From sequence record MZ475891.1: DNA of 64,000 nucleotides; one strand, given 5' to 3'. This document shows positions 12,920 to 62,211 of this stretch, piece by piece. The first letter of the stretch is position 1; each line of letters starts with the position of its first letter. The position numbers were made by a program, and so were the translations under genes. The notes below the pieces were generated by a model that worked only from the letters and a program-made list of their open reading frames with translations, did not search any database and was not told the origin of the DNA.

Positions 12920-12970
12920 AACTGTTTACGGTAATTTCTGAAGGTCAATCAGAATAACGGAATCCTCATC

Positions 12971-13741
12971 ATGAGCAATATCGATACCACAATGCCTGAA
13001 GGCAAATGGGAGTTCAACGAGTCGGTTGCTTGCGTGTTTGATAACATGCTGCAAAACTCCATCCCATCTTATGCCCGTATGCGTGACCTGACGTATCGTC
13101 TGGGTCGTCGCTTCGTAACCCCGGGTTCAGCTATCGTTGATCTCGGTGCTTCACTCGGCCGAGCTATCGAGCCGTTTGCAAAAGAGTTCGGCAAGTATGA
13201 CTACCATCATGCTGCTGACGCTCCTGGCGAAGACTACGAAACAGGCAATCACTATAGCCTGTACGAAGTAGCGCCTGCGATGCGTGAACGTCTGGTGCAG
13301 AATGAAGTGCTCAACTCAGTGAATGCCAAACTGGAAAGTGAATCGCTGGTCGATGCAGACACGTTTATGTTTGATGGGCAAGTGCATTGCTCGCTGATTC
13401 TGAGTGTACTGACGCTCCAGTTCACGCCGATTGAACATCGTCAACACATTCTGGAAAACGTGTACAACTCACTGCAACCAGGCGGCGCATTCATCCTCGT
13501 TGAGAAGGTGTTAGGCGATAACAACTATCTCGACAAAATGCTGGTGGACACCTACTACCAGATGAAAGGCGGTAACGGTTACAGCGCCGAGTCGATTGCG
13601 ACTAAACGTAAGTCACTGGAAGGCGTACTCGTTCCTGTTAAAGCAGCGTGGAACGAAGAACTGTTGCGTAAAGCAGGCTTCGGTCAGGTAGAAAGTTTCT
13701 ATCGCGACCTGAACTTCGCAGGATGGATTGCTATTAAGTAA
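12971..13741 (+). CDS. cmoA: CmoA-like carboxy-S-adenosylmethionine synthase
   Basis: WEFNESVACVFDNM..SIPSY, DLGASLG, TLQF, LQPGGAFILVEK, KGGNGYS..I.TKRKSLE and AGF..V..F...NF all align with CmoA, including the KR Arg. Confidence 0.85.
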   Translation: MSNIDTTMPEGKWEFNESVACVFDNMLQNSIPSYARMRDLTYRLGRRFVTPGSAIVDLGASLGRAIEPFAKEFGKYDYHHAADAPGEDYETGNHYSLYEVAPAMRERLVQNEVLNSVNAKLESESLVDADTFMFDGQVHCSLILSVLTLQFTPIEHRQHILENVYNSLQPGGAFILVEKVLGDNNYLDKMLVDTYYQMKGGNGYSAESIATKRKSLEGVLVPVKAAWNEELLRKAGFGQVESFYRDLNFAGWIAIK

Positions 13742-13750
13742 GGAAATACT

Positions 13751-15013
13751 ATGAAAGTAAACGGGCGTATCTTAGCTATCGTCCCACACAAGACAATGCA
13801 AGACCGTACCAAGTCGGGTGTGGGTTCATACATTGATGGGCTAGAGGCCTACGGCTTCTGCGACTTTATCACAGACGGAGAGAATAGCTCCGTTACGAAA
13901 AGTCAGTGGTTCACTTATGGTGACACTACTCTCAGTGACGGTTATAAGATAGGGCATATCCAGAGCGAGTTGCTGATTGCACTTGAGCGTCTGCCTTACC
14001 GTGCGATTATTTGCAGCACGTATGAGGCGATTGAAGCCTGCGTGTCTCTAGGTCTGCCGAAGATTATGCCCGTTTACTATCGCACGCACAACAGCTTTTT
14101 GCTCACACAAGATCTCAAGGGTCTTGGTGCAGAGAAGATCCACCGTGCGTTGTTACAAGCGAAAGTCACAGGGCTGCGCATCCTTGCTAACTGTGATTCG
14201 ACTGCGATCAATCTTGCTGAGCGCTATAAGACGCCAGCGCACGTTGCCTACAACTCGTTCTCAGTGCCTGACTACAACCCACCAGCTAAACGTGTTCCAC
14301 AGTTGTTGATTATCTGTCGCTATGAGAAGGTCAAGCGCACGTTGTTTGCTGCGCGTATTGCTGCTGCATCAGGACTACCCGTTCGTGTTATGACAGGCAG
14401 TGATCGTCAAGCACGCAATTGGGAGAAAGAGCTGGCTGAGGCGGGCGTCAAAGAGTATACGGTCGTCAGTGGCCTTAGCGGCAAACAGAAACTCGAATTT
14501 ATAGGCGCTTGCACCGTAGCCCTTTCTACTGCGAGCGTTGAATCATTTGCTAATGGTGTGCGTGAGTCCATACCTTACTGCCCTACCTTTATCGTGCAGA
14601 CATCCAAGTACGATTGGGCTAAGGACTATACGCGCTTCTGTACCGCCGACAAGCATGTTCATATCAGAACTGTTGATCGCGTATCGGACCAAGCCGTAGC
14701 TGAAATCGGAAGTGAGATAGCGCAAACAGCTACCACTCGTTATCTGACAGGACCTCAGCGTAAGCAGCTACTGACTGCTTGGGCAAAGCAAGTTGATCGT
14801 GGTTGGTCCGACTTTGTTCAGAAGGCTGTTGTTGACGATGACGGCAAGCCGCTGCGCACCGAGCTGTATCAAGAACTGATCGACAAGTCAGAGATCGATT
14901 GGTCACAAACGCCCACGCTGATGCGTACTGTAAATGCGTTACATAAATGCCACGCTCGTTTGGGCCTGACATTTGATGGCACTAAAATCAAATATAAGAG
15001 GAAGCGCAAATGA
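13751..15013 (+). CDS. GT-B fold glycosyltransferase-like protein
   Basis: C-terminal domain CRYEKVKR...; EX7E motif ESFANGVRE. Confidence 0.65.
   Translation: MKVNGRILAIVPHKTMQDRTKSGVGSYIDGLEAYGFCDFITDGENSSVTKSQWFTYGDTTLSDGYKIGHIQSELLIALERLPYRAIICSTYEAIEACVSLGLPKIMPVYYRTHNSFLLTQDLKGLGAEKIHRALLQAKVTGLRILANCDSTAINLAERYKTPAHVAYNSFSVPDYNPPAKRVPQLLIICRYEKVKRTLFAARIAAASGLPVRVMTGSDRQARNWEKELAEAGVKEYTVVSGLSGKQKLEFIGACTVALSTASVESFANGVRESIPYCPTFIVQTSKYDWAKDYTRFCTADKHVHIRTVDRVSDQAVAEIGSEIAQTATTRYLTGPQRKQLLTAWAKQVDRGWSDFVQKAVVDDDGKPLRTELYQELIDKSEIDWSQTPTLMRTVNALHKCHARLGLTFDGTKIKYKRKRK
14928..14935 (+). promoter_or_regulatory. CTGTAAAT motif (putative phage promoter)
   Basis: 74 nt upstream of the 15010 start. 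Confidence 0.45.
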
Positions 15014-16086
15014 GTGTTATCGGTGATATTTATAACATCCCACAACCTTTCGCAATGTATGTCGGGAATTGTGAGACGCGTGCTCAAGCCAAAGTTGCTG
15101 CGGGCACAATCGAGTGGGCGCCAGAGAAAGTGTGCTGCACCGTAGATGATGGTAACAACCTGTTCCCTAACGTACCTTCAATCAACCCTGCTGACGTGCA
15201 TAAGACAGATGCAGAAACTTTAGTGATTGGCTGTGCACCTTTCGGCGGCCGCATTGACGAGCACATGGACAAAGCTATTCGTAGCGCTATCTATCGTGGA
15301 CGCAACATCGCTGCTGCTATGCATACGCGCCTGGCGGATAATCCTGAATACGTTGAGCTGGCTGATCGCTACAACGTCAAGCTGTATGACTTCCGCCATC
15401 GTCCTGATGCGTACCCACTCGGTACTGGTGAGAAGCGTAGCGGTCTGCGTCTGTTAACTGTCGGTACTGATAGCTCATGCGGTAAGAAGTTTACCACGCT
15501 GTCTCTGTATCGTGAACTCAAAGCTATTCATGAAGCCACTACGTTCTGCTCTACTGGCCAGACGGGTTTCTTGATTAGCGGTTGCGGTATCAACAACGAC
15601 ACGATTGTTGCCGACTTCCTTGCTGGTGCCGCTGAATCACTTTCGCCTGATGGTCCTGCTGATCATGTTTATCTGATTGAGGGTCAAGGCGCTATCACGC
15701 ACCCAGCATACACAGGCGGCAGTATGAGTCTGATTGCTGGCTCGCAGCCTGATCATCTCATCCTGTGTCACGCATGGAACCGTCAGAATCAGTTGGGCGT
15801 TAAGCGTAAGCCTGACCTTGATTTTGAGATGCGTGCTAACATTGAAGCGGCACGTATTCACGGTCTCAACCCGACTTACATCGGTATCAGCATTAACTTC
15901 TCTGAGTGCAACCTCACCGCCGATGAGCAAGATAAAATCCTGTACCAACTCGCATCCACGTATGAGATTCCCGTGTTCGACCCCTCACAGGACACTTCTG
16001 TGTTGCGTGACCTCGCTCGTATGTTAGCAACTAAAGCCAAAGCAAGGAGCCTCGATGGCCAAGCATCCCCTACGCAAGCTGTTTGA
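15010..16086 (+). CDS. DUF1611 family P-loop protein (DgcN-like N-acetyltransferase family)
   Basis: VGTDSSCGKKFT, STGQTG, DFLAGAAE, IEGQGAITHPAY, GSQPDHLILCH. Confidence 0.8.
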   Translation: MSVIGDIYNIPQPFAMYVGNCETRAQAKVAAGTIEWAPEKVCCTVDDGNNLFPNVPSINPADVHKTDAETLVIGCAPFGGRIDEHMDKAIRSAIYRGRNIAAAMHTRLADNPEYVELADRYNVKLYDFRHRPDAYPLGTGEKRSGLRLLTVGTDSSCGKKFTTLSLYRELKAIHEATTFCSTGQTGFLISGCGINNDTIVADFLAGAAESLSPDGPADHVYLIEGQGAITHPAYTGGSMSLIAGSQPDHLILCHAWNRQNQLGVKRKPDLDFEMRANIEAARIHGLNPTYIGISINFSECNLTADEQDKILYQLASTYEIPVFDPSQDTSVLRDLARMLATKAKARSLDGQASPTQAV

Positions 16087-16930
16087 ACAGCATGTGAAAA
16101 AAGAAGTGAAAGCAGACAAGGTAGCTGTACTGCTTTCATCTGGCCTCGATGGTTTGGTTGGCGCATTAGCTGCACACGACCTGGGCAAGAAGGTACATGC
16201 CTTCACATTCCAAATGGGTGACAACCCTAGCTTTGACAGTCGCCACGCACAGATTGTTGCGCAGAAGATGGGTTGGGAGTTCACGCTTGTTAAAGTTCCC
16301 ACCAGCGTGTCTGCTATCGCATTAGCATGGCGCGTGTTGCACTCCAAATATCGCTGCATCAAGAAGCGTGACTATGAGTGTGCGTACCCTATGGTCTATT
16401 GCTACAAGGCAATCAAAGACGCTGGGTATAAGTATGTGCTAAGCGGGCTGGTGGCTGATGGTTACTTCCTGTATAACCGCAACACGCACATTCAGAAAAT
16501 CAGCGGGCCACACTCTGACGCTCAGAAGTATCATGAGTTCCGTACTCAATACTTTAGTCCGTGGCTTAAACACGGTAAGAAGTCTCTGGGCGTTGACGGG
16601 TACAACCCGAGCGGTATGTTGCAGCATGAAATGTTGTGCGATAACTTCGGCCTGATTCACGTTAACCCGTGGATGCAGAACAAGGTGTTTGACTACTTCA
16701 TCAAATACACTTGGCAGGAGCTGAATCAGCCTAAGCAGAAGATGCCACTAACCGAAGCGTGGGCAGAACACATTGCTCTTGTTGGTCATCGCCCACACAG
16801 GGGCTATCAGACAGAAGCCAAAGTGCCTGAATACTTTGAGCATCTGATCGATAACCCTGAGATTAACTTTAACGGGCGCAAGCGCATCATGGACGTGGCA
16901 CGCGACTGGTCCAAACGAGAGCCTGAATAA
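16055..16930 (+). CDS. ATP-dependent amide ligase (asparagine-synthetase C-terminal domain only)
   Basis: PP-loop LLSSGLDG and VLSGLVADGYF (cf. VLSGEGADELF); no N-terminal glutaminase domain. Confidence 0.72.
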   Translation: MAKHPLRKLFEQHVKKEVKADKVAVLLSSGLDGLVGALAAHDLGKKVHAFTFQMGDNPSFDSRHAQIVAQKMGWEFTLVKVPTSVSAIALAWRVLHSKYRCIKKRDYECAYPMVYCYKAIKDAGYKYVLSGLVADGYFLYNRNTHIQKISGPHSDAQKYHEFRTQYFSPWLKHGKKSLGVDGYNPSGMLQHEMLCDNFGLIHVNPWMQNKVFDYFIKYTWQELNQPKQKMPLTEAWAEHIALVGHRPHRGYQTEAKVPEYFEHLIDNPEINFNGRKRIMDVARDWSKREPE

Positions 16931-17185
16931 ATGCATCCTGTTATCACAGACTTTCTTGGTCCTATCGTTAAGCGGCTGGGCTTATTCACTGCTATATTCG
17001 GTTTTGTCGGCGTGCTGCTGTCTGTGATCGCAGTGCTTGTGTGCCGCCCAGAAGTCCTTCAATACGAATACGATACTGTAAATAGACTTCGTACTGAGGG
17101 TATTGTATTCTTGGGTAAAGGCGTTCTTATTTACATCGTAGGCGAGATACTTGAAGGCACGTTCAAGTGGAGAAAAGATGATTAA
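16931..17185 (+). CDS. Small membrane protein
   Basis: Two hydrophobic segments. Confidence 0.6.
   Translation: MHPVITDFLGPIVKRLGLFTAIFGFVGVLLSVIAVLVCRPEVLQYEYDTVNRLRTEGIVFLGKGVLIYIVGEILEGTFKWRKDD
17076..17083 (+). promoter_or_regulatory. CTGTAAAT motif (putative phage promoter)
   Basis: 94 nt upstream of the 17178 start. Confidence 0.45.
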
Positions 17186-17441
17186 CAAATTCGTGATGAA
17201 GAAGACTCCGACCATTGAAGCCTGTCAGTGGAATGGAGAGAACAAGGAAGAGATTGAAGCCTTCCTTGGCGATAGCGGATTCGTTGTTGGACGTTACGTG
17301 CAGATTGGTGTTCTGGATAAATACCAGAAGCCAACTATTGCTAACGTAAGCGTAGGCAACTATGTGATCAAGCGCGACGATGGTAAGTTCTATGCCATTA
17401 CTGCGCAAGATCTGTTTGAGAATTATGTATTAGCAGATTGA
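17178..17441 (+). CDS. Conserved phage hypothetical protein (EA.QW...G.YVIK...FE..Y type)
   Basis: IEACQWNG, VGNYVIKRDDGKFY and LFENY pattern is common in phages; GGAG RBS. Confidence 0.7.
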   Translation: MINKFVMKKTPTIEACQWNGENKEEIEAFLGDSGFVVGRYVQIGVLDKYQKPTIANVSVGNYVIKRDDGKFYAITAQDLFENYVLAD

Positions 17442-19557: not shown

Positions 19558-19959
19558 ATGAGACCTGAAAACATTTCACGCACCTATCGCGTCGGTCAGT
19601 CTGACCTGGAGAAAGCACACAATGTCTGCGGAGAGAACAATGTAACACTCTCAGATGTGGTGCGCAGATACATCGAAAGAATCGTACTGACTGAGGGTGA
19701 GTTCCTTATGAACGAGCGTAAGCACGTACCTGAGTCCCAACTGAATGTACGCCTGCCCTTTTATATTGCGCACTCCTTTGCATCTGTGTGTAAGTCTCGT
19801 GGTACGTTAGCCTCTAAAACCATTCTCAACTTTGTCAAGAATATTGCTCTTTCCGGGACTATCCCTGAGGAGTTAAAGTATGCTTCTGACGCAGAGTTGC
19901 GTGCCTATATTACCTCAGAGCGCTCTCGCCTCGATGCACTGGAAGCAAAACTCAAATGA
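19558..19959 (+). CDS. Tandem ribbon-helix-helix DNA-binding protein
   Basis: Two RHH-like units: SRTYRV...TLSDVVRRYIERI and LNVRLP...LASKTILNFVKNI. Confidence 0.6.
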   Translation: MRPENISRTYRVGQSDLEKAHNVCGENNVTLSDVVRRYIERIVLTEGEFLMNERKHVPESQLNVRLPFYIAHSFASVCKSRGTLASKTILNFVKNIALSGTIPEELKYASDAELRAYITSERSRLDALEAKLK

Positions 19960-20795
19960 TTCTAACTAGTCCCATTCGCTATCAGGGTAACAAGCGCACT
20001 CTGATGCCTCTTATTCTCGAACATGCGCCTGTGAAGGATTGCGTTCGCATGATAGACGCATTCGGTGGTAGTGGTACTGTTGCGCTTAACATGCCGCACA
20101 AGTTTCGCATCTACAATGAGCTGAGCACGCCTGTGTTTGAGATCGTCCAGTTGCTTGCGCATCAAGACCCGAAGAAAACATTGGGTCAGATTAAGCGTAT
20201 CGTCAAGCGTTTTTGTCTAACCAATAGCAGCCAAGACAACTACGACATGTTCCGTGCGTATGTGCAGAAGAAGCCTAGCCCTCTTCACCATTATATCGCA
20301 CACAGGCACGCACGCTCTAACATGCTGCGCTTCAACCAGAAAGGCATCTACAACGTGCCGTTCGGTGAGCGTGGTCTGATTGGTAAGTTCGATCAGCTTG
20401 AGCAGGAGCTGGTGCAGTTCCACGAGCGTATGCAGAACACGCACATCACCAACATGCGCTATAACCTGTTGCTCAAGTCCGTGTCAAAGCATATCGGACC
20501 GAACACGTTCATTTACTTTGATCCTCCGTATCTTGCTAGTGGTGCGATGCAGTACGGCAAGTGGACTGAGCACAACGAGCGCAACCTGCTGTCCGTGCTT
20601 GAGTATCTGAATCGTCAAGGCTGCCCGTGGATGTTGAGTAACGTTCTCCAGCATCGGCACCACACGAACGACTTGCTCAAGCGCTGGCTAAAGAAACACG
20701 CAACGACTGTCATCTATCCTGACAAGTCTTATTCAATGGCCAACTCTCATTCCGATAGTCACAGCACTATCGAGATTCTGGCAATGAACTACTGA
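19956..20795 (+). CDS. dam: DNA adenine methyltransferase (Dam family)
   Basis: SPIRYQGNK, DAFGGSGTV, YNVPFG, YFDPPY, WMLSN. Confidence 0.9.
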   Translation: MILTSPIRYQGNKRTLMPLILEHAPVKDCVRMIDAFGGSGTVALNMPHKFRIYNELSTPVFEIVQLLAHQDPKKTLGQIKRIVKRFCLTNSSQDNYDMFRAYVQKKPSPLHHYIAHRHARSNMLRFNQKGIYNVPFGERGLIGKFDQLEQELVQFHERMQNTHITNMRYNLLLKSVSKHIGPNTFIYFDPPYLASGAMQYGKWTEHNERNLLSVLEYLNRQGCPWMLSNVLQHRHHTNDLLKRWLKKHATTVIYPDKSYSMANSHSDSHSTIEILAMNY

Positions 20796-23805: not shown

Positions 23806-24190
23806 TCAGTTACGTGATCAATTGACCGAAGCTGAATATGCAGAACTTGAGCGCACGACAGCACGGTCAATCATGGAACAAGTGTGGGCACTACGCGGCT
23901 GGACGGTTAAGCTCGACTGGTGCAACTATATGTGCGACGACGTTGATTGGTTATTCCATGGTAATGAACGTAAAGCACCGGTTGATCACGCTATGCCGAA
24001 TTCTGGTGTTGGCACTAGCATTGAGCAGCATCGCCTTAATGTCGTGTTTACTCCTACTGAGGTTAGCGTTACGAACTCACTGGTAGACAGCCCTGTCACG
24101 GGCACTGGTATGTCACTGCGCTGTGCTTACTGCGCGTGGCTTTTAGAAATCGAAAAACAAAAGGCTGCCAATGCGCTGCAATCTGACTGA
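23792..24190 (+). CDS. Hypothetical protein
   Basis: TTG start after GGAG; overlaps both neighbours. Confidence 0.6.
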   Translation: MSSVNQLRDQLTEAEYAELERTTARSIMEQVWALRGWTVKLDWCNYMCDDVDWLFHGNERKAPVDHAMPNSGVGTSIEQHRLNVVFTPTEVSVTNSLVDSPVTGTGMSLRCAYCAWLLEIEKQKAANALQSD

Positions 24191-24686
24191 ACTGCCTATC
24201 AAACTCGATCAGGCTGAAAACATTATGGGCAGCGTGTTCGCGCTTGCTGCTGGCTCCAAGTCCAAACGCCGTGCTACTGCGGCAATGCTCATTCACTTCC
24301 ATGAAGGCTACCCTACCATTATCAGTAGTGGCGTCAATGGTACTGTGCCTGGTGAGAGCAACGTGTGTGAGAACGAAGACCTCACTCTGACGTTTGCCCA
24401 CGTTACCCACGCAGAAGCTAACTGCCTCAATCGCATGGACGAATACAGTCTGTGGCCAGAAGAAGAGGACATCCTGTTTTGTACTGACAGCCCATGTCCT
24501 GATTGTTTGCAGCAACTCGAATCTGCTGGTGTGCAGACCATCGTTTATGCGCGTGAATACAGACTCACAGAGCACCTGGATAAGTCTGCTATTCGCATGT
24601 ATTGTCTCGATATTGAGAACGTGCGGGCGTCTTTGCTGAAATCTGTAAATCGTATAGACGAAGTGATTGCAACCACACCTACTTAA
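24171..24686 (+). CDS. dCMP deaminase (cytidine deaminase family)
   Basis: SSGVNG, HAEANCL, TDSPCPDC, IVYAREY. Confidence 0.9.
   Translation: MRCNLTELPIKLDQAENIMGSVFALAAGSKSKRRATAAMLIHFHEGYPTIISSGVNGTVPGESNVCENEDLTLTFAHVTHAEANCLNRMDEYSLWPEEEDILFCTDSPCPDCLQQLESAGVQTIVYAREYRLTEHLDKSAIRMYCLDIENVRASLLKSVNRIDEVIATTPT
24643..24650 (+). promoter_or_regulatory. CTGTAAAT motif (putative phage promoter)
   Basis: 53 nt upstream of the 24704 start. Confidence 0.5.
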
Positions 24687-28611: not shown

Positions 28612-29712
28612 ATGACGGGTCCTCTCGATCTCACTAACCCACAGCACTTCGAACTGTACTCGTTGCACAGCGTTGATGCGCAGTACATCAATCTGTGTGA
28701 CGCACTCCTCACGCAGGGTACGCACGAATCTGACCCAGATCGCACTGCCGATACGTGGCATACGCTGATCGGTATTGGCTTCCAGTTGTCTAACACCAAC
28801 ATCGCTTTCCCTGCGCTGCTGTCTAAGCGTGTCAACGTCCGTGCAGCTATCGATGAATCCTGCTGGTTCGCACGCGGTGAAACGAACATCGCAACTCTCG
28901 GTTCTAAAATCTGGAACGAGTGGGCAGATGAAGAAGGTGAGAACGGTCCTATCTACGGCTTCCAGTACCGTAACTGGCCTGACATTAAAGTGTTCAACAC
29001 TGTCGAAGGCATGATTGAGCAGCACATCCCACCAGCGATGATTGAGCGCATCTCGAAAGAGATCAACCGCATGAAGGCGCAGGGCTATATCGAAACTGCG
29101 TTGCCTGATGGTCGCGTGTTGTACGAAGGTTATATCGATCAGTACGCTGATGCACTGCGTCAAATCATGGCGCGTAGTCGTAGCCGTCGCATTCGTGTGC
29201 AAGCGTTCAATCCGGGTTACGTTGGTATGCAGAGCCTGCCTCCGTGCCATACCGAGTTTGAGTTCAACGTAACCAAAGCCACTGCGTATGAGATTGCGCA
29301 GATGGAAGCACGCTCAATGCGCCCTGACGCTGACTCACTGCATATCGTGGTGACGATGCGCAGCAATGATGCACTTCTCGGGCGTCCCTTCAATATCGTT
29401 GGCTACAGCGCCATGCACCAGTTGTTTGCGAAGTGGGCTGGTCTGAACGTTGGTTCGTTTACTCTGAACGTTACCAACATGCACATGTACGATCACCACC
29501 GAGAAGCGTATGCACAACAGCGCGAGCAGTGGCTGGAGCTACAGACGCAGATGCAGACGACAGGTAAACCTGTTGTTTACCCAACTCTCGAAATCACTGA
29601 CGACATTCTGGGCCTGACTCCAGAAGAGCTGCTGGATAACGTCAACGTCGATTGGTTCGAGCTGGTGGACTACTCTCCTAAACCTGCTGTTAAAGGACGC
29701 GTAACCAAATGA
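28612..29712 (+). CDS. thyA: Thymidylate synthase
   Basis: IWNEWAD, GPIYGFQYRNW, SRRI, LPPCH, RSNDALLGRPFN, NMHMY. Confidence 0.95.
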   Translation: MTGPLDLTNPQHFELYSLHSVDAQYINLCDALLTQGTHESDPDRTADTWHTLIGIGFQLSNTNIAFPALLSKRVNVRAAIDESCWFARGETNIATLGSKIWNEWADEEGENGPIYGFQYRNWPDIKVFNTVEGMIEQHIPPAMIERISKEINRMKAQGYIETALPDGRVLYEGYIDQYADALRQIMARSRSRRIRVQAFNPGYVGMQSLPPCHTEFEFNVTKATAYEIAQMEARSMRPDADSLHIVVTMRSNDALLGRPFNIVGYSAMHQLFAKWAGLNVGSFTLNVTNMHMYDHHREAYAQQREQWLELQTQMQTTGKPVVYPTLEITDDILGLTPEELLDNVNVDWFELVDYSPKPAVKGRVTK

Positions 29713-31711: not shown

Positions 31712-32410
31712 ATGGCAAAAATTGCTAAAGCAAAGGAAGGGAAAAAGAAAAGCAACCCTATGTTGATTGACCTGAAAAAGTTCAAGTCAGTTAAACAGCT
31801 TAAGGGTGCGAAGTACAACCCTCGTTTCATTACAGACAGCCGACTGAGAGCGCTCGAAGGTTCTTTGGGCAGCTTCGGTGATTTGTCTGGCGTGGTGTTC
31901 AACAACAGCGTGGACAGTGGCGTGCTGATCTCAGGCCACCAGCGCCTCAAGTCGATTGAGAAGTGGGACTCGCGCATTGAGATTCAGCAAACGTCTGACA
32001 AGTACGGCACGGTAGCGCTGGGTTATATCCATGCCACCAGCGCCAAAGGTAAAACGATCAGCATCCCACTGCGTATCGTTAACTGGTCAGATAAGAAAGT
32101 GGAGTTTGCTGCTAACATTGCCGCGAACGCCCACGGCGGTGAGTTCGATAACAAAAAGCTCGCGTCACTTGTCGAGAAGCTGGACCTGACTACAATCAAG
32201 CCAGCTCTTATCGGGCTTGACCCGTTAGAGATTCGCGGCCTGCAACAGACGCTGAGCAAACAAGCTATCGTCGAGCAGGAAAAGCGTGTTGGTAAAACAA
32301 CAGGCAAAATGAACGGCAGCACCGGCGAGTTCAAAGAGTACACGACTGATGAAGTTGGTACTGCGCTGACCTGCACCTGCCCACGTTGTGGCTTTAAGTT
32401 CGAGGGATAA
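31712..32410 (+). CDS. ParB/Srx-like N-terminal domain protein with C-terminal zinc ribbon
   Basis: KYNPR, LISGHQRLK, ANIAAN; CTCPRCGFKF. Confidence 0.78.
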   Translation: MAKIAKAKEGKKKSNPMLIDLKKFKSVKQLKGAKYNPRFITDSRLRALEGSLGSFGDLSGVVFNNSVDSGVLISGHQRLKSIEKWDSRIEIQQTSDKYGTVALGYIHATSAKGKTISIPLRIVNWSDKKVEFAANIAANAHGGEFDNKKLASLVEKLDLTTIKPALIGLDPLEIRGLQQTLSKQAIVEQEKRVGKTTGKMNGSTGEFKEYTTDEVGTALTCTCPRCGFKFEG

Positions 32411-32411
32411 C

Positions 32412-34547
32412 ATGATCATCAAGCCGCCTACAATGAAAGAGATTAATAAGCTGCCCAAGCCCTGGTCAGGTATGAGTTTCTTTGCAGGTTGCGGTGGTTC
32501 ATCTACCGGTCACAAGATGGCCGGCATTAACATCCTACTGAGCAACGAGTTCGTGGACGCGGCTCGTGAATCGTATGAAGCGAACCATCCAACAACCAAA
32601 GTGTTGCCCCACGATATTCGTCGTCTTGACCCGAAAAAGCTGCTTAGCTATTGCGGCCTGAGCCAAGGCGAACTGGACTTGCTTGACGGCAGTCCTCCGT
32701 GCTTCACCGAAGACACGTTCATTCATACTGACACTGGTATGAAGTTCATCACTGATATGCGCATCGGTGACTTCGCTATGACCTCTGTTGGTAAGTATCA
32801 TCCTGTGTATGACACGATGGTGCGTCCGTATGACGGTCAGATGCACAGAATTGAAACGCTGCTCGGTCAGAACAATGCAACACCTGAACACCCATTCTTT
32901 GTTCGTCGTCAGAGCGAAGAAGGTGGCGGGTACAGTGCGCCGTTCTGGTGTGACGCTAAAGATGTGCAGGAAGGTGACCTGTTAGGTACGCCTCGTGTTA
33001 CGCCTGACATGGGTGAAGCACACACGCACGAGATTATCTCGTCGTTGACCGCGCAGCTTGTGCGTTGGATTGCATTGCCTGAGTTCTGGTGGCTGATTGG
33101 ACACTGGTGCAATCGCGGTGCAATCGATAAGATTCGTGGTGTCGATGTTATTCAATTCACCTCGATGACAGCGATGGAAAACTCGCTGGTGGAACAAGCG
33201 TTCGACGTGCTCAAGTTAAGCAGCATCAACAGCGCTTCGTCCGACATGGGCGTTCATCGTAAGACCGTTCGTGTTGTTATGGACACAGACCTGTTGCTGT
33301 TCTTGCGTATGTTCATCGCACAGGGCAAGAAGTCTATGTCACGCCGTCTGCCTGGCATGATCTTCCATCTGGCTAAAGAGCTGAAACAGCAATTCATTCT
33401 CGGCTATCTGGGTCGTGATTACGTCACAGCAATGGGCGTTGGTCATGCGTTAGAGGCTGACTCAAAGCGCTTCCTCGTTGAGATGAATTACCTGTGCTGC
33501 TCTGCGTTCAACCGACCGCTGTTCGATGCAATGTTGTTCACTGACTTGCACTACGGCAGTCCGATGTTACCGCCGAGTCGCTTCATTACCAAAGAGCACA
33601 TCGGCTTCCTGTTCTTGCAAGAAGAGGTTAATTTCTTCTTCGAGTTCGAGCCGGAAGACCCGCATCTGTGGGTTGAAGTGATTGAGAACTTTACGCACCA
33701 TGAAACGTGCAACGTCTATAACTTCTCAGTCAGTGTTGATGAGACGTATGTTGCTAACGGCATGGTCGTGCATAACTGCAAAGGGTTCTCGACTGCTGGC
33801 GTGAAAGAAGACGGCTGGGGTAAAGAGGTTAAGTACAGCGGCAACAAGTATCAGCAAGTCGATGACCTGTTCGATCAGTATTGCCGTATGCTCAAGCACA
33901 TGCAGCCTAAAACGTTCACTGCGGAAAACGTTAGTGGCCTCGTTAAAGGTGCGTCGAAGGGTTACTTCATTGAAATCATGAAGACCTTTGATCAGCTGGG
34001 TTACTATGTGCGAGCACCGTTGCTTAATGCTGCGTGGCTTGGTGTGCCTCAGTCTCGTGAACGTATCATCTTTATGGGTGTGCGCAAAGACGTGGCGAAA
34101 GCACTCGGTTATAAAACTGCGTTGACTGCTGTGCCTGATGTAACACCTCAATCAAGCATGGCATTCCTTGCAGATGCATTGCCGAACATTCGTCGCTATA
34201 AAGGTACGGAGCGTGACATTATCAAGTATCTGCCTGCTGTTAACGGGCCGATGCCTACGATTACCGCCGCTGACGCTATCGCATACGAAACAGCACGCTT
34301 CTCCTCTGCTGGCTTCATTGAAGACGACAAAGGGCACAGACGCAAGCTGACGATTGATGAACTCAAAGTTGTATCAGGCATGCCTAGTGATTACGTGCTC
34401 ACAGGTAAGTTTGAAGAACAATGGGAACGTCTCGGTCGTGTGTGCGTACCTGCAATGACGTGTGCTGCGGCAAGCGCGTTGATACGCCATGTGCTTGAGC
34501 CTTACGCGAAGCTGCGTAAAAAGAAACCTGGGGATCGTTTTCGTTAA
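32412..34547 (+). CDS. DNA cytosine-C5 methyltransferase homolog, intein-containing (candidate carboxymethyltransferase)
   Basis: Motif I FFAGCGG, IV SPP/CKGFS (split), VI ENVSG, VIII QSRERI, IX RKLTIDE, X LGRVCVP; ATG 32412. Confidence 0.88.
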   Translation: MIIKPPTMKEINKLPKPWSGMSFFAGCGGSSTGHKMAGINILLSNEFVDAARESYEANHPTTKVLPHDIRRLDPKKLLSYCGLSQGELDLLDGSPPCFTEDTFIHTDTGMKFITDMRIGDFAMTSVGKYHPVYDTMVRPYDGQMHRIETLLGQNNATPEHPFFVRRQSEEGGGYSAPFWCDAKDVQEGDLLGTPRVTPDMGEAHTHEIISSLTAQLVRWIALPEFWWLIGHWCNRGAIDKIRGVDVIQFTSMTAMENSLVEQAFDVLKLSSINSASSDMGVHRKTVRVVMDTDLLLFLRMFIAQGKKSMSRRLPGMIFHLAKELKQQFILGYLGRDYVTAMGVGHALEADSKRFLVEMNYLCCSAFNRPLFDAMLFTDLHYGSPMLPPSRFITKEHIGFLFLQEEVNFFFEFEPEDPHLWVEVIENFTHHETCNVYNFSVSVDETYVANGMVVHNCKGFSTAGVKEDGWGKEVKYSGNKYQQVDDLFDQYCRMLKHMQPKTFTAENVSGLVKGASKGYFIEIMKTFDQLGYYVRAPLLNAAWLGVPQSRERIIFMGVRKDVAKALGYKTALTAVPDVTPQSSMAFLADALPNIRRYKGTERDIIKYLPAVNGPMPTITAADAIAYETARFSSAGFIEDDKGHRRKLTIDELKVVSGMPSDYVLTGKFEEQWERLGRVCVPAMTCAAASALIRHVLEPYAKLRKKKPGDRFR
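32700..33776 (+). mobile_element. Intein (359 aa) with degenerate LAGLIDADG-like region
   Basis: Starts CFTEDT, block B ATPEHPFFV, ends NFSV...VANGMVVHN, followed by Cys. Confidence 0.92.
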
Positions 34548-49402: not shown

Positions 49403-49933
49403 TTAGAGCTTGATGCGAATGTCAGATGGACGCAAGGCAACGTTAGCAGTTACGGTACCGCCAACGATTTTAAGATCCGCTGTGGAGTTCTCATCGCCGA
49501 CAGTTCCCCAGACCAACGCACTGCACGTAGTAGATGCAGACCAGTTTGCAAAAGCAGATCCCGCTGAGGCCGCTGCACACAGACGCATCATGAACCAAGT
49601 AGGCGTACCTGACGTGGCAATCACAAAGTTGTTAGCCTGAGAACTGAGAGGTATAACAAGCGACAGCGCATCTGGGTCGATAGTCGGTACGATAGACAGG
49701 CACGCTAGGTCACCGAGAAAGTTTGACGCTGTAGCGAAAGGTGCAACCGCAGCAGCCGTCCACGTAGGCAGCTGGCTGGAGCCCAACAGAGCAAGGATCT
49801 GATCGTCTGTAGGCATAGTTCCGTTGAACAGACCTACATGCAGCACGTTGTCCAACATAGTTGAGTTAGGAACAAAACGCAGCAGCAGGTTGACCAAACT
49901 CTGGTTACTATTAAAAGAAGCAGATACACGCAT
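49403..49933 (-). CDS. Putative virion structural protein (short paralog class)
   Basis: LHVGLFNGTMPT, GTPTWF, GTVGDENSTADLKIVGG; start ATG 49933. Confidence 0.65.
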   Translation of the reverse strand: MRVSASFNSNQSLVNLLLRFVPNSTMLDNVLHVGLFNGTMPTDDQILALLGSSQLPTWTAAAVAPFATASNFLGDLACLSIVPTIDPDALSLVIPLSSQANNFVIATSGTPTWFMMRLCAAASAGSAFANWSASTTCSALVWGTVGDENSTADLKIVGGTVTANVALRPSDIRIKL

Positions 49934-50997
49934 TAGTAGTTCTCCAGAGTTACAGGACGCAGGTTGATAACAAGACTCGGGCACAGTTGCTCCTGTGCAG
50001 GAATCACAGTCGCGTCAGGCATAAGAATGTCGTTTGATGCAGAGACTTTCAGATCGTCTGTCACGCTAAGGCCAAAGTGGTTGAAGACACGCCCGTAGTT
50101 ATACCCAGACTGGTTCGACACCGCAGGGATAGCAGTGAATGACGTGGCAAAAGCAAACAAGCATCCCACCATGTGACCGATTTTACTCAGGGTACGCGGT
50201 GAAGCGCCTGAAACGTAATCGCCATAGAAGTGCAACGCGAACTGACCAAAGCCCGTAGACCACTGAGTCGCTACGTTAGCAGCTTTAGTGACTAAACGGA
50301 AGCGACGGCCAGTAACAGTTGAAGGCAACTGGAAGTATTTCTCCGAGGCTGCGCTGGCGTTGAACAGGTTAGCTGTTACGCTAGTAACGTCAGTCCAGCT
50401 ACTGCCATTCTGCACCTGCAGGAAGACCATATACGGAGCAGATGAGACCAAGACGTTGTTGCTGCCTGTAGCGAACGTCAATGACGCCAGAGAGTTGATA
50501 GCAACATCAGCACCAAAATCGTACTCAGCAATCGTCCACGAACCATCTGTGTTCTGCACACGAGGTTGAGGTAGAGAAGCTGTAGCATTCGCTGGGAATG
50601 GCAGAAGGTTAGCGACGGTAGTTGATGCACAGCGGTGTGCCAGAATCGTGAAGAAGATTTGGTCTAACTGTAAGGCAACGTTGGTCAATGAGTTTTGCGA
50701 CAGCACGTTCGCATAGTCTGTGCTATACGTAGGCAGATTCACTTTAGGCAACACGCGTTTGCCACGATAACCTTGAACAGTAGTCCACGCTGGTGCAGGA
50801 GATACCTGATATGCTGTCACTGTGTTCGGCGTAGCTGTGAACTGACCGCCACTTGGAGCCGCTGTAAAAGAACGCGCAGACAGCATGTTGTTCAGCACTG
50901 TTTGTAGATCATAGTTCAAGGGGTCAGGCATAGCCCCCTCAAGGAATGCGCCGTAGATTTGCTGCGTGGTACTCGAATTAAATGGAGCGAGTTTCAT
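49933..50997 (-). CDS. Putative virion structural protein (long paralog class)
   Basis: IAEYDFGADV, LQVQNG.SW, RRFRLV; start ATG 50997. Confidence 0.65.
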   Translation of the reverse strand: MKLAPFNSSTTQQIYGAFLEGAMPDPLNYDLQTVLNNMLSARSFTAAPSGGQFTATPNTVTAYQVSPAPAWTTVQGYRGKRVLPKVNLPTYSTDYANVLSQNSLTNVALQLDQIFFTILAHRCASTTVANLLPFPANATASLPQPRVQNTDGSWTIAEYDFGADVAINSLASLTFATGSNNVLVSSAPYMVFLQVQNGSSWTDVTSVTANLFNASAASEKYFQLPSTVTGRRFRLVTKAANVATQWSTGFGQFALHFYGDYVSGASPRTLSKIGHMVGCLFAFATSFTAIPAVSNQSGYNYGRVFNHFGLSVTDDLKVSASNDILMPDATVIPAQEQLCPSLVINLRPVTLENY

Positions 50998-51024
50998 ATT
51001 ATGCCCTTGTGTTGAAGACACATC

Positions 51025-51063: not shown

Positions 51064-51594
51064 TTATACCTGGAACGACAGATCGAGGAAGCGATATGCC
51101 TGACTGGTCTTAATCGTGCCGCCGATGAACTGTAGTTCAGCATCAGAGCCTTCTGCACCAACAGTGCCGATAATCACAGGCCCTGCAAGCAGCGTACCAG
51201 GAGAAGACGTTAGCATGAAGTTAGCCCACGAAGCCACAGCAGCCGCACCAGCAGCGGCAACGATACGAGCTACGAAGTAGGTAGGTGTACCATCAGCCAC
51301 GCCAACAAGTGTACGACTACTACCCGCAAGAGGCAGAGAGATTGTACGAGATGAAGGGTTGACAGAAGGTGTAAGGTTATCAATGGCGATAGAGCCAAGG
51401 AAGTTAGCCTGCGTCAAACCTAAACCTGTACCACCCAGCACGTTCCAACCCGAAGTCAGAGACATAGCCATGAGATTTTTCATCTGAGGCTTAGTGCCTT
51501 TAAACAGACCGATATGCAACGTATTTGCAGCAATTGCGGTAGCGGGAAACACTGAGTTCAGTTGAGCCAAAGAAAGGCCACGGTTACTAATCAT
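51064..51594 (-). CDS. Putative virion structural protein (short paralog class)
   Basis: LHIGLFKGTKP, GTPTYF, GTVGAEGSDAELQFIGG. Confidence 0.65.
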   Translation of the reverse strand: MISNRGLSLAQLNSVFPATAIAANTLHIGLFKGTKPQMKNLMAMSLTSGWNVLGGTGLGLTQANFLGSIAIDNLTPSVNPSSRTISLPLAGSSRTLVGVADGTPTYFVARIVAAAGAAAVASWANFMLTSSPGTLLAGPVIIGTVGAEGSDAELQFIGGTIKTSQAYRFLDLSFQV

Positions 51595-52667
51595 ACGCCT
51601 CTCCCTACGATTGCGTCAGCACGAACTTTGAAAGCAGGTACAGGCACGTCCGTAAACTTATCCAGCGTGTAAGTTGCGTCACGCATGTAAATATCCGAAG
51701 TCGCGGCTTTCGTCAGGTCATCTGTGATAGTCACGTGGAACATCGCGCAGTAACGGCCAAGCACTGTAGTAATAGCAGCAGGATAGTTGAAAGCCCACTC
51801 AGTGGTAGTAGTATAGCCCGCGGCAGGGATTACATGCAGCATAGTCATGTGCTTGTACTTGCCCAATGTACGTGGCTTGGTAGTGGTATAGTTGCCAAAG
51901 AAATGCAAACCAAACGGATAGTGACCAACAGTAGACCACGGGAAGGTCGGGTTCTTATTCACTACGCGGAACTTCTGCGCTTTAACAGAAGCAGGAAGAA
52001 CGTAATGATTCGAACCGTAGTTAGTGGACACACGGGTAGCTGCGTATACGTCCACTGCATCTATCCACTGCCCGTCAACTTGAGCCTGCAAAATAGTTTG
52101 CTGGGTATTCGTTATCATGTACGTGCTGTTGGTAGAACCACATGTTGTGCCGAGGATGCTCTTGAGTTCAATCTCTGCACCGAAGTCGTACTCAGCACAC
52201 AGCCACCAGCCTTCCGCAGTTGTGTTATAGATATTACTTAACACGCGGTTGCCTGATGTAGAGAAGGCAACAATCGTATCAAAGTGATGCGCAATCATCG
52301 CAGCAGCTACAGCCTCGTTGTAATACTGAGCCTGAATAGAGAAACGCTGATCGATAGGTGCGAAACGAATTTTAGGCACGATACGCTTAGCACCAGCAGG
52401 CACGGCAATAGCTGAGTTACGTGCAACGGTTTCGATCCAAGAAGGAACAAAGTTGTTACCGCTAAACGTTGTATTGCTAATGCTTGGCGTAAACTGAGAA
52501 GCGATTGGCGATCCAATACGCGCCATGTTAAACAGACGTATAGCAACAGCTTCATTGAATGCGCTGTGAATCCCTTTCTCACCATCGGCAGGAGCATCAG
52601 TATCATAGAGCAGACCAAAATACTGAGCGTTGCCTGACAGCAGAGGGTTGTACGGTAGAATCTCCAT
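51591..52667 (-). CDS. Putative virion structural protein (long paralog class)
   Basis: CAEYDFGAEI, LQAQVDGQW, QKFRVV. Confidence 0.65.
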   Translation of the reverse strand: MEILPYNPLLSGNAQYFGLLYDTDAPADGEKGIHSAFNEAVAIRLFNMARIGSPIASQFTPSISNTTFSGNNFVPSWIETVARNSAIAVPAGAKRIVPKIRFAPIDQRFSIQAQYYNEAVAAAMIAHHFDTIVAFSTSGNRVLSNIYNTTAEGWWLCAEYDFGAEIELKSILGTTCGSTNSTYMITNTQQTILQAQVDGQWIDAVDVYAATRVSTNYGSNHYVLPASVKAQKFRVVNKNPTFPWSTVGHYPFGLHFFGNYTTTKPRTLGKYKHMTMLHVIPAAGYTTTTEWAFNYPAAITTVLGRYCAMFHVTITDDLTKAATSDIYMRDATYTLDKFTDVPVPAFKVRADAIVGRGV

Positions 52668-60000: not shown

Positions 60001-61098
60001 TCATAGCGTAATAGAGGACGGGGCATTGCACCAGTCTTTAACTGCTTGAGCAACTACCAAGTCAGCTTGTTGGGCTACTGTCGTCCCTGTCTGCTTAATA
60101 TCGGCGGAATCGTCCTGTGCAATATCGAACATAGCGAGCCTGTACCCACCAACAGTCTCGTAAGCAATGGCACCAACAGTCAGCACACACGCACCATCAT
60201 CAGCCATGCCTGTTACAATGACAGAAGGAACATCGGGAATAGTCATTGCATTCTGATCTGCGTTCGGCGTTAGTCCTTCATTGAATGAGTTGTTAGTGGT
60301 GCCTCCACCTATAGGGTACGTGGTGAAGCGCCGCTCCTGCATAGTGATTACCATAGCGCCCGACACCGTGTTGAATGCCTGGGGATCGAATACATCTGCC
60401 CAATTGCCATTCCCGCCATAAGTCGTATCGTTCGGCAGCATAATATCAATATAGTTTTGCGCCTGATAAGTATTAGGTATAGGGTAGAACACAGCAGACG
60501 AATAGAACTGGTCATAGTAATAGTTAACACCAGATTGACCTGAACTACGAAACGATATTGTCGCGTTATTGAGAAACTTAGGCTGGTACTGCGTCTTATT
60601 CTTCGTACTACGCATACTGGTGACGATGCGCTGCGGATAAAGATACAAGCGAGAGGCCAGCTTTGCTTTATCGTACTGCCCAACAAGAGTAGAGCCAAGA
60701 ATGTTGCTCGTCTTGTCTCCGATAGTACCCCTGGGTGCGAGATACTTCACGGTGCAATAGCGGTCAGCTTGTTGGTCTGGCGTGTTGCCGTCTGAGGAAA
60801 CGTTATACATGCCATTCCATGAAGCACTATTCGACGCGTTGTTCTGGTTGAATAGCTGAATGTTTGCGCTGTGTGCAGGGTAATAGCGATTGGACTTTAC
60901 ACCACTAAGCGCTGTTGATTTAAGAGCGTCTACGGTACCGCAAGTCATCGCACGACATTCAGGCACGGACTGTAATAGATACTGGCGTGCTTGTCTGATA
61001 GTGTCTTTACTGATTGTGCTGTCAAACAGATATAAGGAGGACATTGCACGAGTTCGCACAGCTTTATCTCGTACTCCTCCGACGGAAGCGAATAGCAT
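60001..61098 (-). CDS. Putative fibre-like protein, MLFAS family copy 2
   Basis: MLFASVG...LYLFD...GVKSNRYY. Confidence 0.6.
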   Translation of the reverse strand: MLFASVGGVRDKAVRTRAMSSLYLFDSTISKDTIRQARQYLLQSVPECRAMTCGTVDALKSTALSGVKSNRYYPAHSANIQLFNQNNASNSASWNGMYNVSSDGNTPDQQADRYCTVKYLAPRGTIGDKTSNILGSTLVGQYDKAKLASRLYLYPQRIVTSMRSTKNKTQYQPKFLNNATISFRSSGQSGVNYYYDQFYSSAVFYPIPNTYQAQNYIDIMLPNDTTYGGNGNWADVFDPQAFNTVSGAMVITMQERRFTTYPIGGGTTNNSFNEGLTPNADQNAMTIPDVPSVIVTGMADDGACVLTVGAIAYETVGGYRLAMFDIAQDDSADIKQTGTTVAQQADLVVAQAVKDWCNAPSSITL

Positions 61099-61105
61099 AG
61101 CTACC

Positions 61106-62161
61106 TCATAGTGTGTAGGACTTCGTTGTTACTAAGGCAGCCAACACCGCACTCGAACAAGTAAAAGCAGGCTGAGTGCCTACCGAAGTGCCTGTCGTCA
61201 GTGTTAGGTCCGAACCAATGTCCATCACCATAAGCTCGCTGGATTGTTCCGTGGCTACAGCGATAGCGCCAAAGCTCAATGCTGCATCTGGGTCATCGGC
61301 CTGAGTAACATCAATGTAAGGCAATTCGACGCACACCTCATTGGGTGTACCGTTTCGCCAGTTCTGACCACTGCCGTAGCTCGTATACCACGTGGCGTTA
61401 GCGAACCATGTGCGCGTGTAGTTATACTGTGGGTTTATCATGTACAGACCACCATACTCTGTACGCAGCGCACCTAACGCAGTAGGCGTACTGTTTTCAT
61501 AGTAACCAGCACCAACAGGGAAAGATACACCAGGCATCGTCCAGAATCGAGAAACACCAGAACCCAGAGAGATGAATCCAGGAGTTATGCTCTGCGTATA
61601 ATCAAAGTAGTCCGTGCTTGTGCCAGTACGTCCTCCCATTGTGCTCTTTGGTCGGAGTTTAACGGACTTGCCACCAAACAAAGAAAGACGTGAAGTAGGC
61701 AGCAGATACGTACGGCTCATGCTATCGAAGGAAGTAACACCACCATAACCAGATTGTGTACCAAGCATGTTGCCTGTAGCGTTATCGAAAGCAGCTTTAG
61801 TCGAAGGCGAGGCCACCGTAACAAAACGCGCAGCATAGTTCTCAACAGTCTGACCATCGCTTATGCCATTTGTCAGACGGAAGAACCAACCGTTGTTACT
61901 GGACACAGGACTGAACTGACTGATACGTCCTGTATGAGCCAAATAAAACTTATTATTCTTTACGCCGCCTATAGCAGTAGCGTCCAGAGTATTCCCTGTC
62001 ATTGTGTGCGTGCAGCTACGCGCTTCATGGCACACGTTCAGCAAACCTACAGGGGTGCGAACATTCTGTTTGTCTACGGACGTGTCAAACAAAAATAAGT
62101 GCTGCATAGCAGACTTGCGAATGTTTTCCTGTATAACAGCTCCAGCAGAAACGAATAGCAT
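61106..62161 (-). CDS. Putative fibre-like protein, MLFAS family copy 1
   Basis: MLFVSAG...LFLFD...GVKNNKFY; start ATG 62161. Confidence 0.6.
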   Translation of the reverse strand: MLFVSAGAVIQENIRKSAMQHLFLFDTSVDKQNVRTPVGLLNVCHEARSCTHTMTGNTLDATAIGGVKNNKFYLAHTGRISQFSPVSSNNGWFFRLTNGISDGQTVENYAARFVTVASPSTKAAFDNATGNMLGTQSGYGGVTSFDSMSRTYLLPTSRLSLFGGKSVKLRPKSTMGGRTGTSTDYFDYTQSITPGFISLGSGVSRFWTMPGVSFPVGAGYYENSTPTALGALRTEYGGLYMINPQYNYTRTWFANATWYTSYGSGQNWRNGTPNEVCVELPYIDVTQADDPDAALSFGAIAVATEQSSELMVMDIGSDLTLTTGTSVGTQPAFTCSSAVLAALVTTKSYTL

Positions 62162-62171
62162 ACAAGCTCCT

Positions 62172-62211
62172 AAAACGAAAGAGGGCAGACACCTTTCGAT
62201 GCCCACCCTTT
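62172..62211 (-). terminator. Rho-independent terminator
   Basis: Minus strand GGGTGGGCATC-GAAA-GGTGTCTGCCC followed by TCTTTCGTTTT. Confidence 0.6.

Follow-up and report, generated by a model that had tools for sequence, protein, structure and literature searches.

We analysed a 64,000-nucleotide stretch of the genome of Erwinia phage pEa_SNUABM_13 (MZ475891.1), a 264.7-kb jumbo phage of E. amylovora whose kin are the Snuvirus and Alexandravirus phages, and refer to this whole stretch as the window. Two adjacent genes in it, for a glycosyltransferase (GT) and a DUF1611 protein, very likely belong to the pathway that makes 5-carboxymethylcytosine (5cxmC) in DNA. They are probably optional additions to that pathway, by which a more elaborate, not yet described modified cytosine would be built. 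In the model that we prefer, to which we give a probability of about 0.5 and whose chemistry is inferred, the DUF1611 protein (together with a racemase where one is present) would prepare the amine used by an amide ligase, and the GT would then glycosylate the side chain carried by the DNA. The genes concerned, all on the plus strand, are the following:

12971 to 13741, plus strand: CmoA-like carboxy-S-adenosylmethionine (carboxy-SAM) synthase, 256 amino acids (TIGR00740, PHROG 4752).
13751 to 15013, plus strand: the GT-B/GT4-like glycosyltransferase, 420 amino acids, basic, with a Lys/Arg-rich C-terminal tail (AlphaFold2 model, Foldseek).
15010 to 16086, plus strand: the DUF1611/DgcN-like protein, 358 amino acids, of a phage clade with Cys180 and Tyr221 (PF17396 and PF07755).
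16055 to 16930, plus strand: CmoY-like AMP-forming amide ligase of the 'type-1' subfamily, synthetase domain only, 291 amino acids (PF00733).
31712 to 32410, plus strand: a 232-amino-acid gene product 5' of CmoX whose membership in the 5cxmC system is uncertain (ParB-like by the RefSeq name of its SNUABM_7 orthologue).
32388 to 34547, plus strand: CmoX-type DNA cytosine C5-carboxymethyltransferase, 719 amino acids, interrupted at the catalytic Cys by an intein (PF00145, divided by Hint/intein domains).

All genes of the cassette at 12971 to 16930 are called 'hypothetical protein' in the record, and the first of them is labelled 'tRNA methyltransferase' in the RefSeq entry of a sister phage. 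The original prediction, made from the letters alone, had placed two overlapping open reading frames (ORFs) for a GT and a DUF1611 protein between a carboxy-SAM synthase and an amide ligase, and this layout was borne out: the 5' gene matches CmoA (TIGR00740), the 3' gene matches Asn_synthase (PF00733), and both ORFs are present as described, the GT stop and DUF1611 start sharing the ATGA at 15010 to 15013 (a 4-nt overlap) and the DUF1611 and ligase ORFs overlapping by 32 nt. A Shine-Dalgarno-like purine run precedes the start of the GT, DUF1611 and ligase genes. The GT and DUF1611 ORFs are not due to chance, since both have homologues at E < 1e-70 on independent phage contigs. A scan for sigma-70 promoters and terminators between positions 11000 and 18500 gave no signal exceeding that of shuffled sequences.

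The framework for these genes is the work of Yang et al. 2025 (PMC12783734), published in December 2025, on the biochemistry of Synechococcus phage S-B43, in which CmoA produces carboxy-SAM, CmoX (a homologue of C5-methyltransferases, recognisable by its SPPC motif and Arg350) yields 5cxmC in DNA, and CmoY, an AsnS-like ligase, couples glycine onto the 5cxmC carboxyl to give 5-glycylcarboxymethylcytosine. Glycine is the sole proven appendage, and the authors state that other ligase clusters must use amines not yet identified (PMC12783734). All three enzymes have counterparts in the window. The CmoA homologue matches TIGR00740 (6.6e-40; 137 bits, below the cut-off of 193) and PHROG 4752 (1.9e-78) and is 28% identical to S-B43 CmoA, and the AsnS-like ligase that adjoins it matches PF00733 (6.2e-13) and is 32-33% identical to S-B43 CmoY (tblastn against the CmoY gene, 5e-32). 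The product of 32388 to 34547, about 15 kb away from the cassette, has SpCmoX (8yf3) at the top of its ranking of PDB sequences (1.8e-54, with M.HaeIII at 1e-16), contains the SPPC motif and aligns its R684 with R350 of SpCmoX, which binds carboxy-SAM. An intein with Hint/Intein_splicing domains occupies approximately residues 105-463 and is inserted at the catalytic Cys of SPPC, so this enzyme would be active only once spliced. Because CmoA, a CmoX with both the SPPC motif and the carboxy-SAM-binding Arg, and a CmoY-like ligase are all present, the window contains, judged by its genes, the full 5cxmC system that Yang et al. 2025 described.

The same CmoX intein arrangement was seen in an unrelated metagenomic cassette (L006, 743 amino acids), and a near-identical contig (L008) encodes a CmoX of 341 amino acids without an intein. 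The gene at 31712 to 32410 is named 'ParB-like partition protein' in a RefSeq sister genome, which would suit the CmoX-ParBc association reported in PMC12783734; its product had no Pfam match at E <= 0.01. At the end of one related cassette (L003:12162-13025) lies a gene with a DAHP_synth_1 domain, for a protein of 287 amino acids that scores as an AroFGH-type 3-deoxy-D-arabino-heptulosonate 7-phosphate (DAHP) synthase (TIGR00034; 180 bits, cut-off 173), and for this reason it was rejected as a 3-deoxy-D-manno-octulosonate 8-phosphate (Kdo-8-P) synthase feeding the GT. As the first enzyme of the shikimate pathway it may boost prephenate for CmoA, which its AroFGH-type score makes likelier than a Kdo-8-P role; the question of prephenate supply is raised in the discussion of PMC12783734.

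The evidence that links the GT and the DUF1611 protein to this pathway comes from gene contexts in GenBank phages and in contigs carrying homologues, covering at least 14 phage lineages. The cassettes were found in these states:

CmoA-ligase only: Rivsvirus SNUABM_5.
CmoA-DUF1611-ligase: Alexandra, AD1 and L028.
DUF1611-ligase: L038.
CmoX-DUF1611-ligase-CmoA: L040.
DUF1611-racemase-ligase: L039.
CmoA-GT-DUF1611-ligase: the window group.
CmoX(intein)-GT-DUF1611-ligase-CmoA: L007.
GT-DUF1611-racemase-ligase: the SNUABM_3 group, L003, L021 and L022.
CmoA-GT-ligase: L010.

The GT family proper adjoins CmoA, CmoX or ligase genes in all ten lineages examined, with varying gene orders, and in nine of the ten the DUF1611 gene directly follows the close-family GT. 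The phage DUF1611 gene always lies 5' of the ligase gene, either directly or with a racemase-like gene in between. The latter arrangement was found in five cassettes (L013:4532-5467, L003:10322-11287, L021:9055-9957, L022:7213-8190 and L039:7055-8038) and not in the window. The racemase-like products, of 300-327 amino acids, match PF01168 and TIGR00492, have an invariant lysine for pyridoxal phosphate (PLP) and find alanine racemase (9e-16) and serine racemase (2e-13) as their best PDB matches. The original prediction had remarked that DgcN is usually paired with an epimerase and that none is present here; this absence holds for the window cassette, yet relatives do carry such an enzyme, of the PLP alanine/serine-racemase type and not of the DgcA type.

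The Erwinia/Dickeya jumbo phages display four cassette states (no addition; DUF1611; GT and DUF1611; GT, DUF1611 and racemase), across which CmoA is 75-91% identical, and the ligases of the three DUF1611-bearing states are 82-87% identical. When IMG/VR was scanned with the GT and ligase alignments, and the Joint Genome Institute (JGI) metagenomes with that of the ligase, only Erwinia/Dickeya jumbo phages and one short contig were recovered. The window itself is a mosaic at the DNA level: similarity of the SNUABM_3 type extends from 12928 to 15753 (CmoA, GT and the first part of DUF1611), and similarity of the Alexandra type from 15008 to 16919, beginning at the DUF1611 start codon. The GT shares 80% identity with that of group B (the SNUABM_3 type), and the DUF1611 protein of the window is 75% identical to that of group C (the Alexandra type) versus 57% to that of group B.

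The reading that neither gene has a role in DNA, with the GT acting on virion proteins or the host envelope, the DUF1611 protein serving as an auxiliary enzyme of D-amino-acid metabolism and their position being accidental, can draw on the facts that proteins and cell-wall polymers are common acceptors for GT4 enzymes (the structural matches of the GT include TarM and SdgB) and that DgcN is a catabolic enzyme, but it is very improbable given that CmoA, CmoX and ligase genes stay linked to the two genes in at least 14 lineages, although gene order has been rearranged and GT identity is only 25-40%, that the cassette is surrounded in the window by replication and nucleotide-metabolism genes, that relatives of the GT are fused to ParB_N domains and that the signature residues of DgcN are lost.

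We next consider the GT. In direct family searches of Pfam, NCBIfam, PHROGs and PDB sequences (phmmer) the window protein matched nothing, and the family proper is small, with seven clusters, including that of the window, among 5.8e9 proteins. A profile search of 1.84e9 representatives returned 10 sequences at E < 1e-30 and 229 at E < 1e-3. At the Pfam gathering threshold for Glycos_transf_1 the window GT has no match and its close relatives match weakly (best 7.8e-6), while the distant relatives P0018, P0022, P0076 and P0104 pass it and P0067 falls just under (26.2 versus 26.4 bits). The original prediction had proposed an AlphaFold-type check, and an AlphaFold2 model built from a seven-sequence alignment (A1) displays a two-Rossmann GT-B fold, with a mean predicted local distance difference test (pLDDT) score of 79.8 and a predicted template-modelling (pTM) score of 0.79. 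Foldseek found 215 PDB matches for this model at E <= 1e-3, the best 50 of which are all glycosyltransferases or pseudo-glycosyltransferases, mostly of GT4. Neighbours at 5e-10 to 1e-7 are GlgM, BshA, SenB, the DNA GT of phage HY126 and MshA, with the tetrahydrobiopterin glucosyltransferase also among the best, and structure matches in BFVD agree with the GT-B fold.

The EX7E motif noticed in the original prediction corresponds to E264 and E272, which are invariant in alignment A1, as are R190 and K195, and which align to the EX7E of the tetrahydrobiopterin glucosyltransferase 9v0l. G23, H113, R190, K195, K247, E264 and E272 are conserved across 13 close relatives; in 90 distant relatives G23, H113, K195 and E264 are kept in 100%, K247 and E272 in 98% and R190 in 80%. 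With the EX7E and donor-site residues thus kept in 103 relatives, the donor site of the GT looks intact. The protein is basic (isoelectric point (pI) 9.2), and the seven cassette-type GTs have pI values of 8.9-9.5, net charges of +7 to +18 and Lys/Arg-rich C-terminal tails; the median pI of the distant relatives is 6.1. Two of the distant relatives (P0076 and P0104) are fused to a ParB_N domain, which is often fused to DNA methyltransferases (PMC12783734). From the basic pI and tails, the ParB_N fusions and the occurrence of the family proper solely beside Cmo genes we infer that this GT4-like enzyme is directed to DNA and that DNA is its acceptor.

Some 220 distant relatives of the GT, of about 450 amino acids, include proteins of a Kyanoviridae cyanophage genome and of a T4-like phage contig. 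In Synechococcus phage BUCT-ZZ01 such a relative (L026:6001-7344) directly follows queE, queD and folE, genes for 7-deazaguanine precursors, and is followed by more GT-like genes; another lies at L011:8001-9392. As a candidate for the role of the GT, service in a hydroxymethyl-pyrimidine pathway was rejected: the 366-amino-acid thymidylate synthase encoded at 28612 to 29712 has an internal insertion, yet passes the ordinary ThyA equivalog threshold, and hence there is no sign of a hydroxymethylase.

The DUF1611 protein was correctly recognised in the original prediction as a member of the family of DgcN. Over its full length it has the DUF1611_N and DUF1611 domains (PF17396, 5.5e-18, and PF07755, 2.1e-46), residues 10-327 match PDB 7xrj (3.3e-53), the sequence match on which the assignment of the DgcN fold rests, and it matches the NCBIfam DgcN model NF041892 at 2.2e-86 with 289.8 bits, below the equivalog cut-off of 480. 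According to a preprint, 7xrj is the D-glutamate acetyltransferase reported by Yu et al. 2023. We aligned 96 homologues, of which 67 are lower-identity and bacterial-like and 29 are phage-like. Of the 69 columns conserved at >= 90% in the bacterial-like set, 60 are kept in the phage-like set. Positions 180, 219 and 221 of the window protein are Cys, His and Tyr. Cys at 180 and Tyr or Phe at 221 are found in 29 of 29 phage-clade sequences, and Arg at 180 and Asp at 221 in 7xrj and in 64 sequences of the other DUF1611 clade; in the bacterial-like set this Arg and this Asp are each kept in at least 94% of the sequences. His219, present in 96% of the 67 bacterial-like sequences, is variable in the phage clade.

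The window protein therefore shares with DgcN the domain architecture and full-length similarity and differs from it in its equivalog score, in the Arg/His/Asp trio and in the pairing with DgcA; by its sequence it is a protein of the DgcN fold without being an equivalog of DgcN. Since the DgcN fold comes without the equivalog score and with Arg and Asp replaced by Cys and Tyr, the acceptor specificity has very probably changed, and for the same reasons D-glutamate N-acetylation as such appears unlikely. The replacements allow an altered reaction but are no proof of one. The pI of the protein is 5.6 (5.1-7.0 in its clade), similar to that of its bacterial homologues, of CmoA and of the racemase, and unlike that of the GT and the ligase.

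What ties the DUF1611 protein to the ligase is that the two vary together. The ligases of all cassettes with a DUF1611 protein of the Cys/Tyr clade form one tight subfamily (type-1; 53-84% identity), while CmoA at these loci shows 41-91% identity and the GT only 25-40%, except for a close Erwinia pair (80%). All 29 sequences of the clade are paired with a type-1 ligase. The ligases without it (those of SNUABM_5, L010 and S-B43) are 23-34% identical to the type-1 subfamily; SNUABM_5, with no DUF1611 gene, has a CmoA 77% identical to that of the window and a ligase only 25% identical. The single phage cassette with a DUF1611 protein of the DgcN-like Arg/His/Asp type, L040, has a ligase of the L010 type. 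DUF1611 clade and ligase subtype thus travel together, as expected for a shared ligand, and, with the window ligase in a separate and tightly conserved subfamily, its amine is probably not glycine. The GT has no such tie: it is present or absent beside ligases that are 82-87% identical and occurs once (L010) with another ligase type. As the GT-less phages Alexandra and AD1 keep ligases 84-87% identical to that of the window, the GT appears to act after the ligase or independently of it.

The preferred model combines these observations. By homology to the S-B43 enzymes, CmoA would make carboxy-SAM, CmoX, after splicing of its intein, would carboxymethylate cytosine C5 in phage DNA, and the CmoY-like ligase would adenylate the 5cxmC carboxyl and then join an amine to it. 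The DUF1611 protein, acidic, of the small-molecule type and with the fold of DgcN (a coenzyme A (CoA)-dependent N-acyltransferase) around a putatively altered acceptor pocket, would act, before ligation, on the free amine or amino acid that the ligase uses as its partner. This partner would probably be derived from a D-amino acid, as the DUF1611 gene stands next to a gene for a PLP alanine/serine-type racemase in half of the related cassettes; in the racemase-less phage of the window, the host would supply it. The GT would act last, with a host nucleoside diphosphate (NDP)-sugar as donor and the side chain on the DNA as acceptor. The cytosine that results would be both glycosylated and extended by an amide, and would protect the DNA against host nucleases. 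A more specific form of this proposal, in which a single C5 carboxymethyl handle bears both a D-amino-acid-derived amide and a sugar and a DgcN-fold enzyme has gained a new specificity by conversion of its Arg/Asp pocket to Cys/Tyr, is tentative and, taken as a whole, rather doubtful. In formal terms the amide of 5cxmC belongs, like the product of DgcN, to the N-(substituted acetyl) amino acids, and amide formation might for that reason involve the conserved Cys or, alternatively, a CoA thioester of the cytosinyl-acetyl group.

Several considerations weigh against this model. N-acetylation of the alpha-amine of a mono-amino acid before ligation would block ligation, so the model requires a second amine, another acyl donor or a changed reaction. 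The L010 cassette, in which a GT stands with a different ligase type and no DUF1611 gene, indicates that the acceptor of the GT need not be a DUF1611-dependent moiety, and the adjacency of GT and DUF1611 in nine of ten lineages could instead mean that each acts on the product of the other. The use of pI as an indicator of a DNA enzyme is a heuristic only, for the proven DNA enzyme SpCmoY is acidic (pI 5.8). Finally, there are no NDP-sugar genes among the window ORFs scanned, for which reason a supply of NDP-sugar by the phage itself was rejected.

Among the alternatives the one that survives best, though we consider it unlikely, is that both enzymes act after ligation: the ligase would append a di-amino compound or amino acid, the DUF1611 protein would N-acylate the remaining DNA-borne amine and the GT would add a sugar. 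Such an order would suit DgcN being an acetyl-CoA-dependent N-acetyltransferase, the translational coupling of DUF1611 to the ligase through their 32-nt overlap and the adjacency of the GT and DUF1611 genes; the co-variation of DUF1611 clade and ligase subtype fits it too, as a shared ligand explains it equally before or after ligation. The DUF1611 protein is, however, acidic to neutral like its bacterial small-molecule homologues, whereas the GT and the ligase are basic, and no DNA-binding extension or fusion was seen among 90 DUF1611 homologues. Moreover, as the racemase partner requires an amino acid in free form, this branch of the pathway belongs to the metabolite level.

Improbable in our view is that the GT and the DUF1611 protein together build the amine of the ligase away from DNA, as in the synthesis of mycothiol or bacillithiol, so that, for example, a glycosylated or amino-sugar small molecule is coupled to 5cxmC. 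The top structural neighbours of the GT do include GT4 enzymes with small-molecule acceptors (BshA, MshA, SenB, GlgM and the tetrahydrobiopterin glucosyltransferase), and the ATGA overlap and the adjacency of the two genes would be in keeping with it. But close phages without the GT keep a ligase that is 84-87% identical and a DUF1611 protein that is 75% identical, so the substrate of the ligase cannot depend on the GT; in addition, the GT is a strongly basic protein that ends in a Lys/Arg tail, it has ParB_N-fused relatives and it stands in a cassette without a deacetylase to free the amine of an amino sugar. The original prediction had left open whether the two enzymes perform extra tailoring or make the amine for the ligase. 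Its assignment of both to the pathway is upheld by the linkage to Cmo genes, and a role of the DUF1611 protein in making or processing the amine is favoured by its co-variation with the ligase subtype; production of the amine by the GT is disfavoured by the 84-87% identity between the ligases of phages with and without it, by its basic pI and Lys/Arg tail and by its ParB_N-fused relatives.

Compared with CmoA-CmoX-CmoY of S-B43, the window has the three core enzyme homologues, an AsnS-like ligase consisting of the synthetase domain only, and a carboxyl handle on DNA followed by amide extension in common. It differs in that its CmoX is interrupted by an intein and encoded 15 kb away from the cassette, in that its ligase belongs to a separate subfamily and in that it has the GT and the DUF1611 protein, S-B43 itself having no GT, no DUF1611 protein and no racemase. 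PMC12783734 and its supplements make no mention of glycosyltransferases, DUF1611, racemases, inteins or Erwinia phages, and our literature search found no further paper that ties a glycosyltransferase, DUF1611 or a racemase to 5cxmC. With DgcN (NF041892; 7xrj) the DUF1611 protein shares the two-domain organisation (DUF1611_N and DUF1611) and 60 of the 69 family-conserved columns, but it scores under the equivalog cut-off, has Cys/Tyr for Arg/Asp in a clade found only in phages and does not have a conserved His there; DgcN pairs with a DgcA-type racemase of the enolase superfamily, while the racemase of the phage relatives is of the PLP alanine-racemase type, and in those relatives the DUF1611 protein always has an AsnS-like ligase as a partner.

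For the GT, precedent for a GT-B fold that glycosylates a modified cytosine in phage DNA is provided by the arabinosyltransferase of HY126 (9ir0/9iqz), a phage among those reported with arabinosylated 5-hydroxycytosine in their DNA (PMC13326640). This enzyme, BshA and MshA share with the GT the two-Rossmann GT-B fold, the EX7E motif and the donor-site Arg/Lys and His. Identity to solved GT-B structures is only 12-16%, at TM-scores of 0.5-0.6, and the window GT has no Pfam match; its C-terminal region, some 110 residues long and with a basic tail at its end, is specific to the family, and the presumed acceptor, a side chain attached to 5cxmC, would be new. Glucosyl-5-hydroxymethylcytosine of T4 and the amino-acid and polyamine derivatives of 5-hydroxymethyluracil likewise begin with a handle at C5 of a pyrimidine, which is then decorated with a sugar or amine on the DNA polymer, but in those systems the handle is a hydroxymethyl group introduced at the nucleotide level, whereas here it would be a carboxyl group installed by a transferase that uses a SAM analogue. 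Taken by sequence, the core thus appears to be a member of the known CmoA/CmoX/CmoY system, and the additions a very diverged GT4-like family and a new clade of the DgcN family.

The 5cxmC pathway would on this evidence have been extended in a modular way by three types of enzyme, namely a DNA-type GT, a re-tooled enzyme with the DgcN fold and a PLP racemase. The Erwinia/Dickeya phages form a natural series from which the contribution of each addition can be read in the DNA chemistry of existing isolates. If the preferred model is true, it would define a new class of hypermodified cytosine, a second function for DUF1611 and new enzymes for site-directed functionalisation of DNA; with a base that carries both a sugar and an amino acid, this would be the first case in which the DUF1611 fold and an alanine-racemase-type enzyme have been recruited to modify nucleic acids.

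Other features of the window were noted in passing. Near the cassette lie genes for a Dam-type N6-adenine methyltransferase (19956 to 20795; PF02086, 8.6e-26) and a dCMP deaminase (24171 to 24686), besides the thymidylate synthase at 28612 to 29712. In Alexandra, AD1, SNUABM_3 and SNUABM_5 (L012, L013, L014 and L025) a gene for 206-216 amino acids follows 3' of the ligase; it is absent from the window, where positions 16931 to 17441 hold short ORFs only (84 and 96 amino acids), and neither the gene of the relatives nor these short ORFs had a match in Pfam. Between 47886 and 62796, on the minus strand, the window carries an array of divergent paralogues to which the RefSeq annotation gives no family and whose pairwise identities are 22-31%, for example 49933 to 51021 with 51591 to 52667 and 60001 to 61098 with 61106 to 62206.

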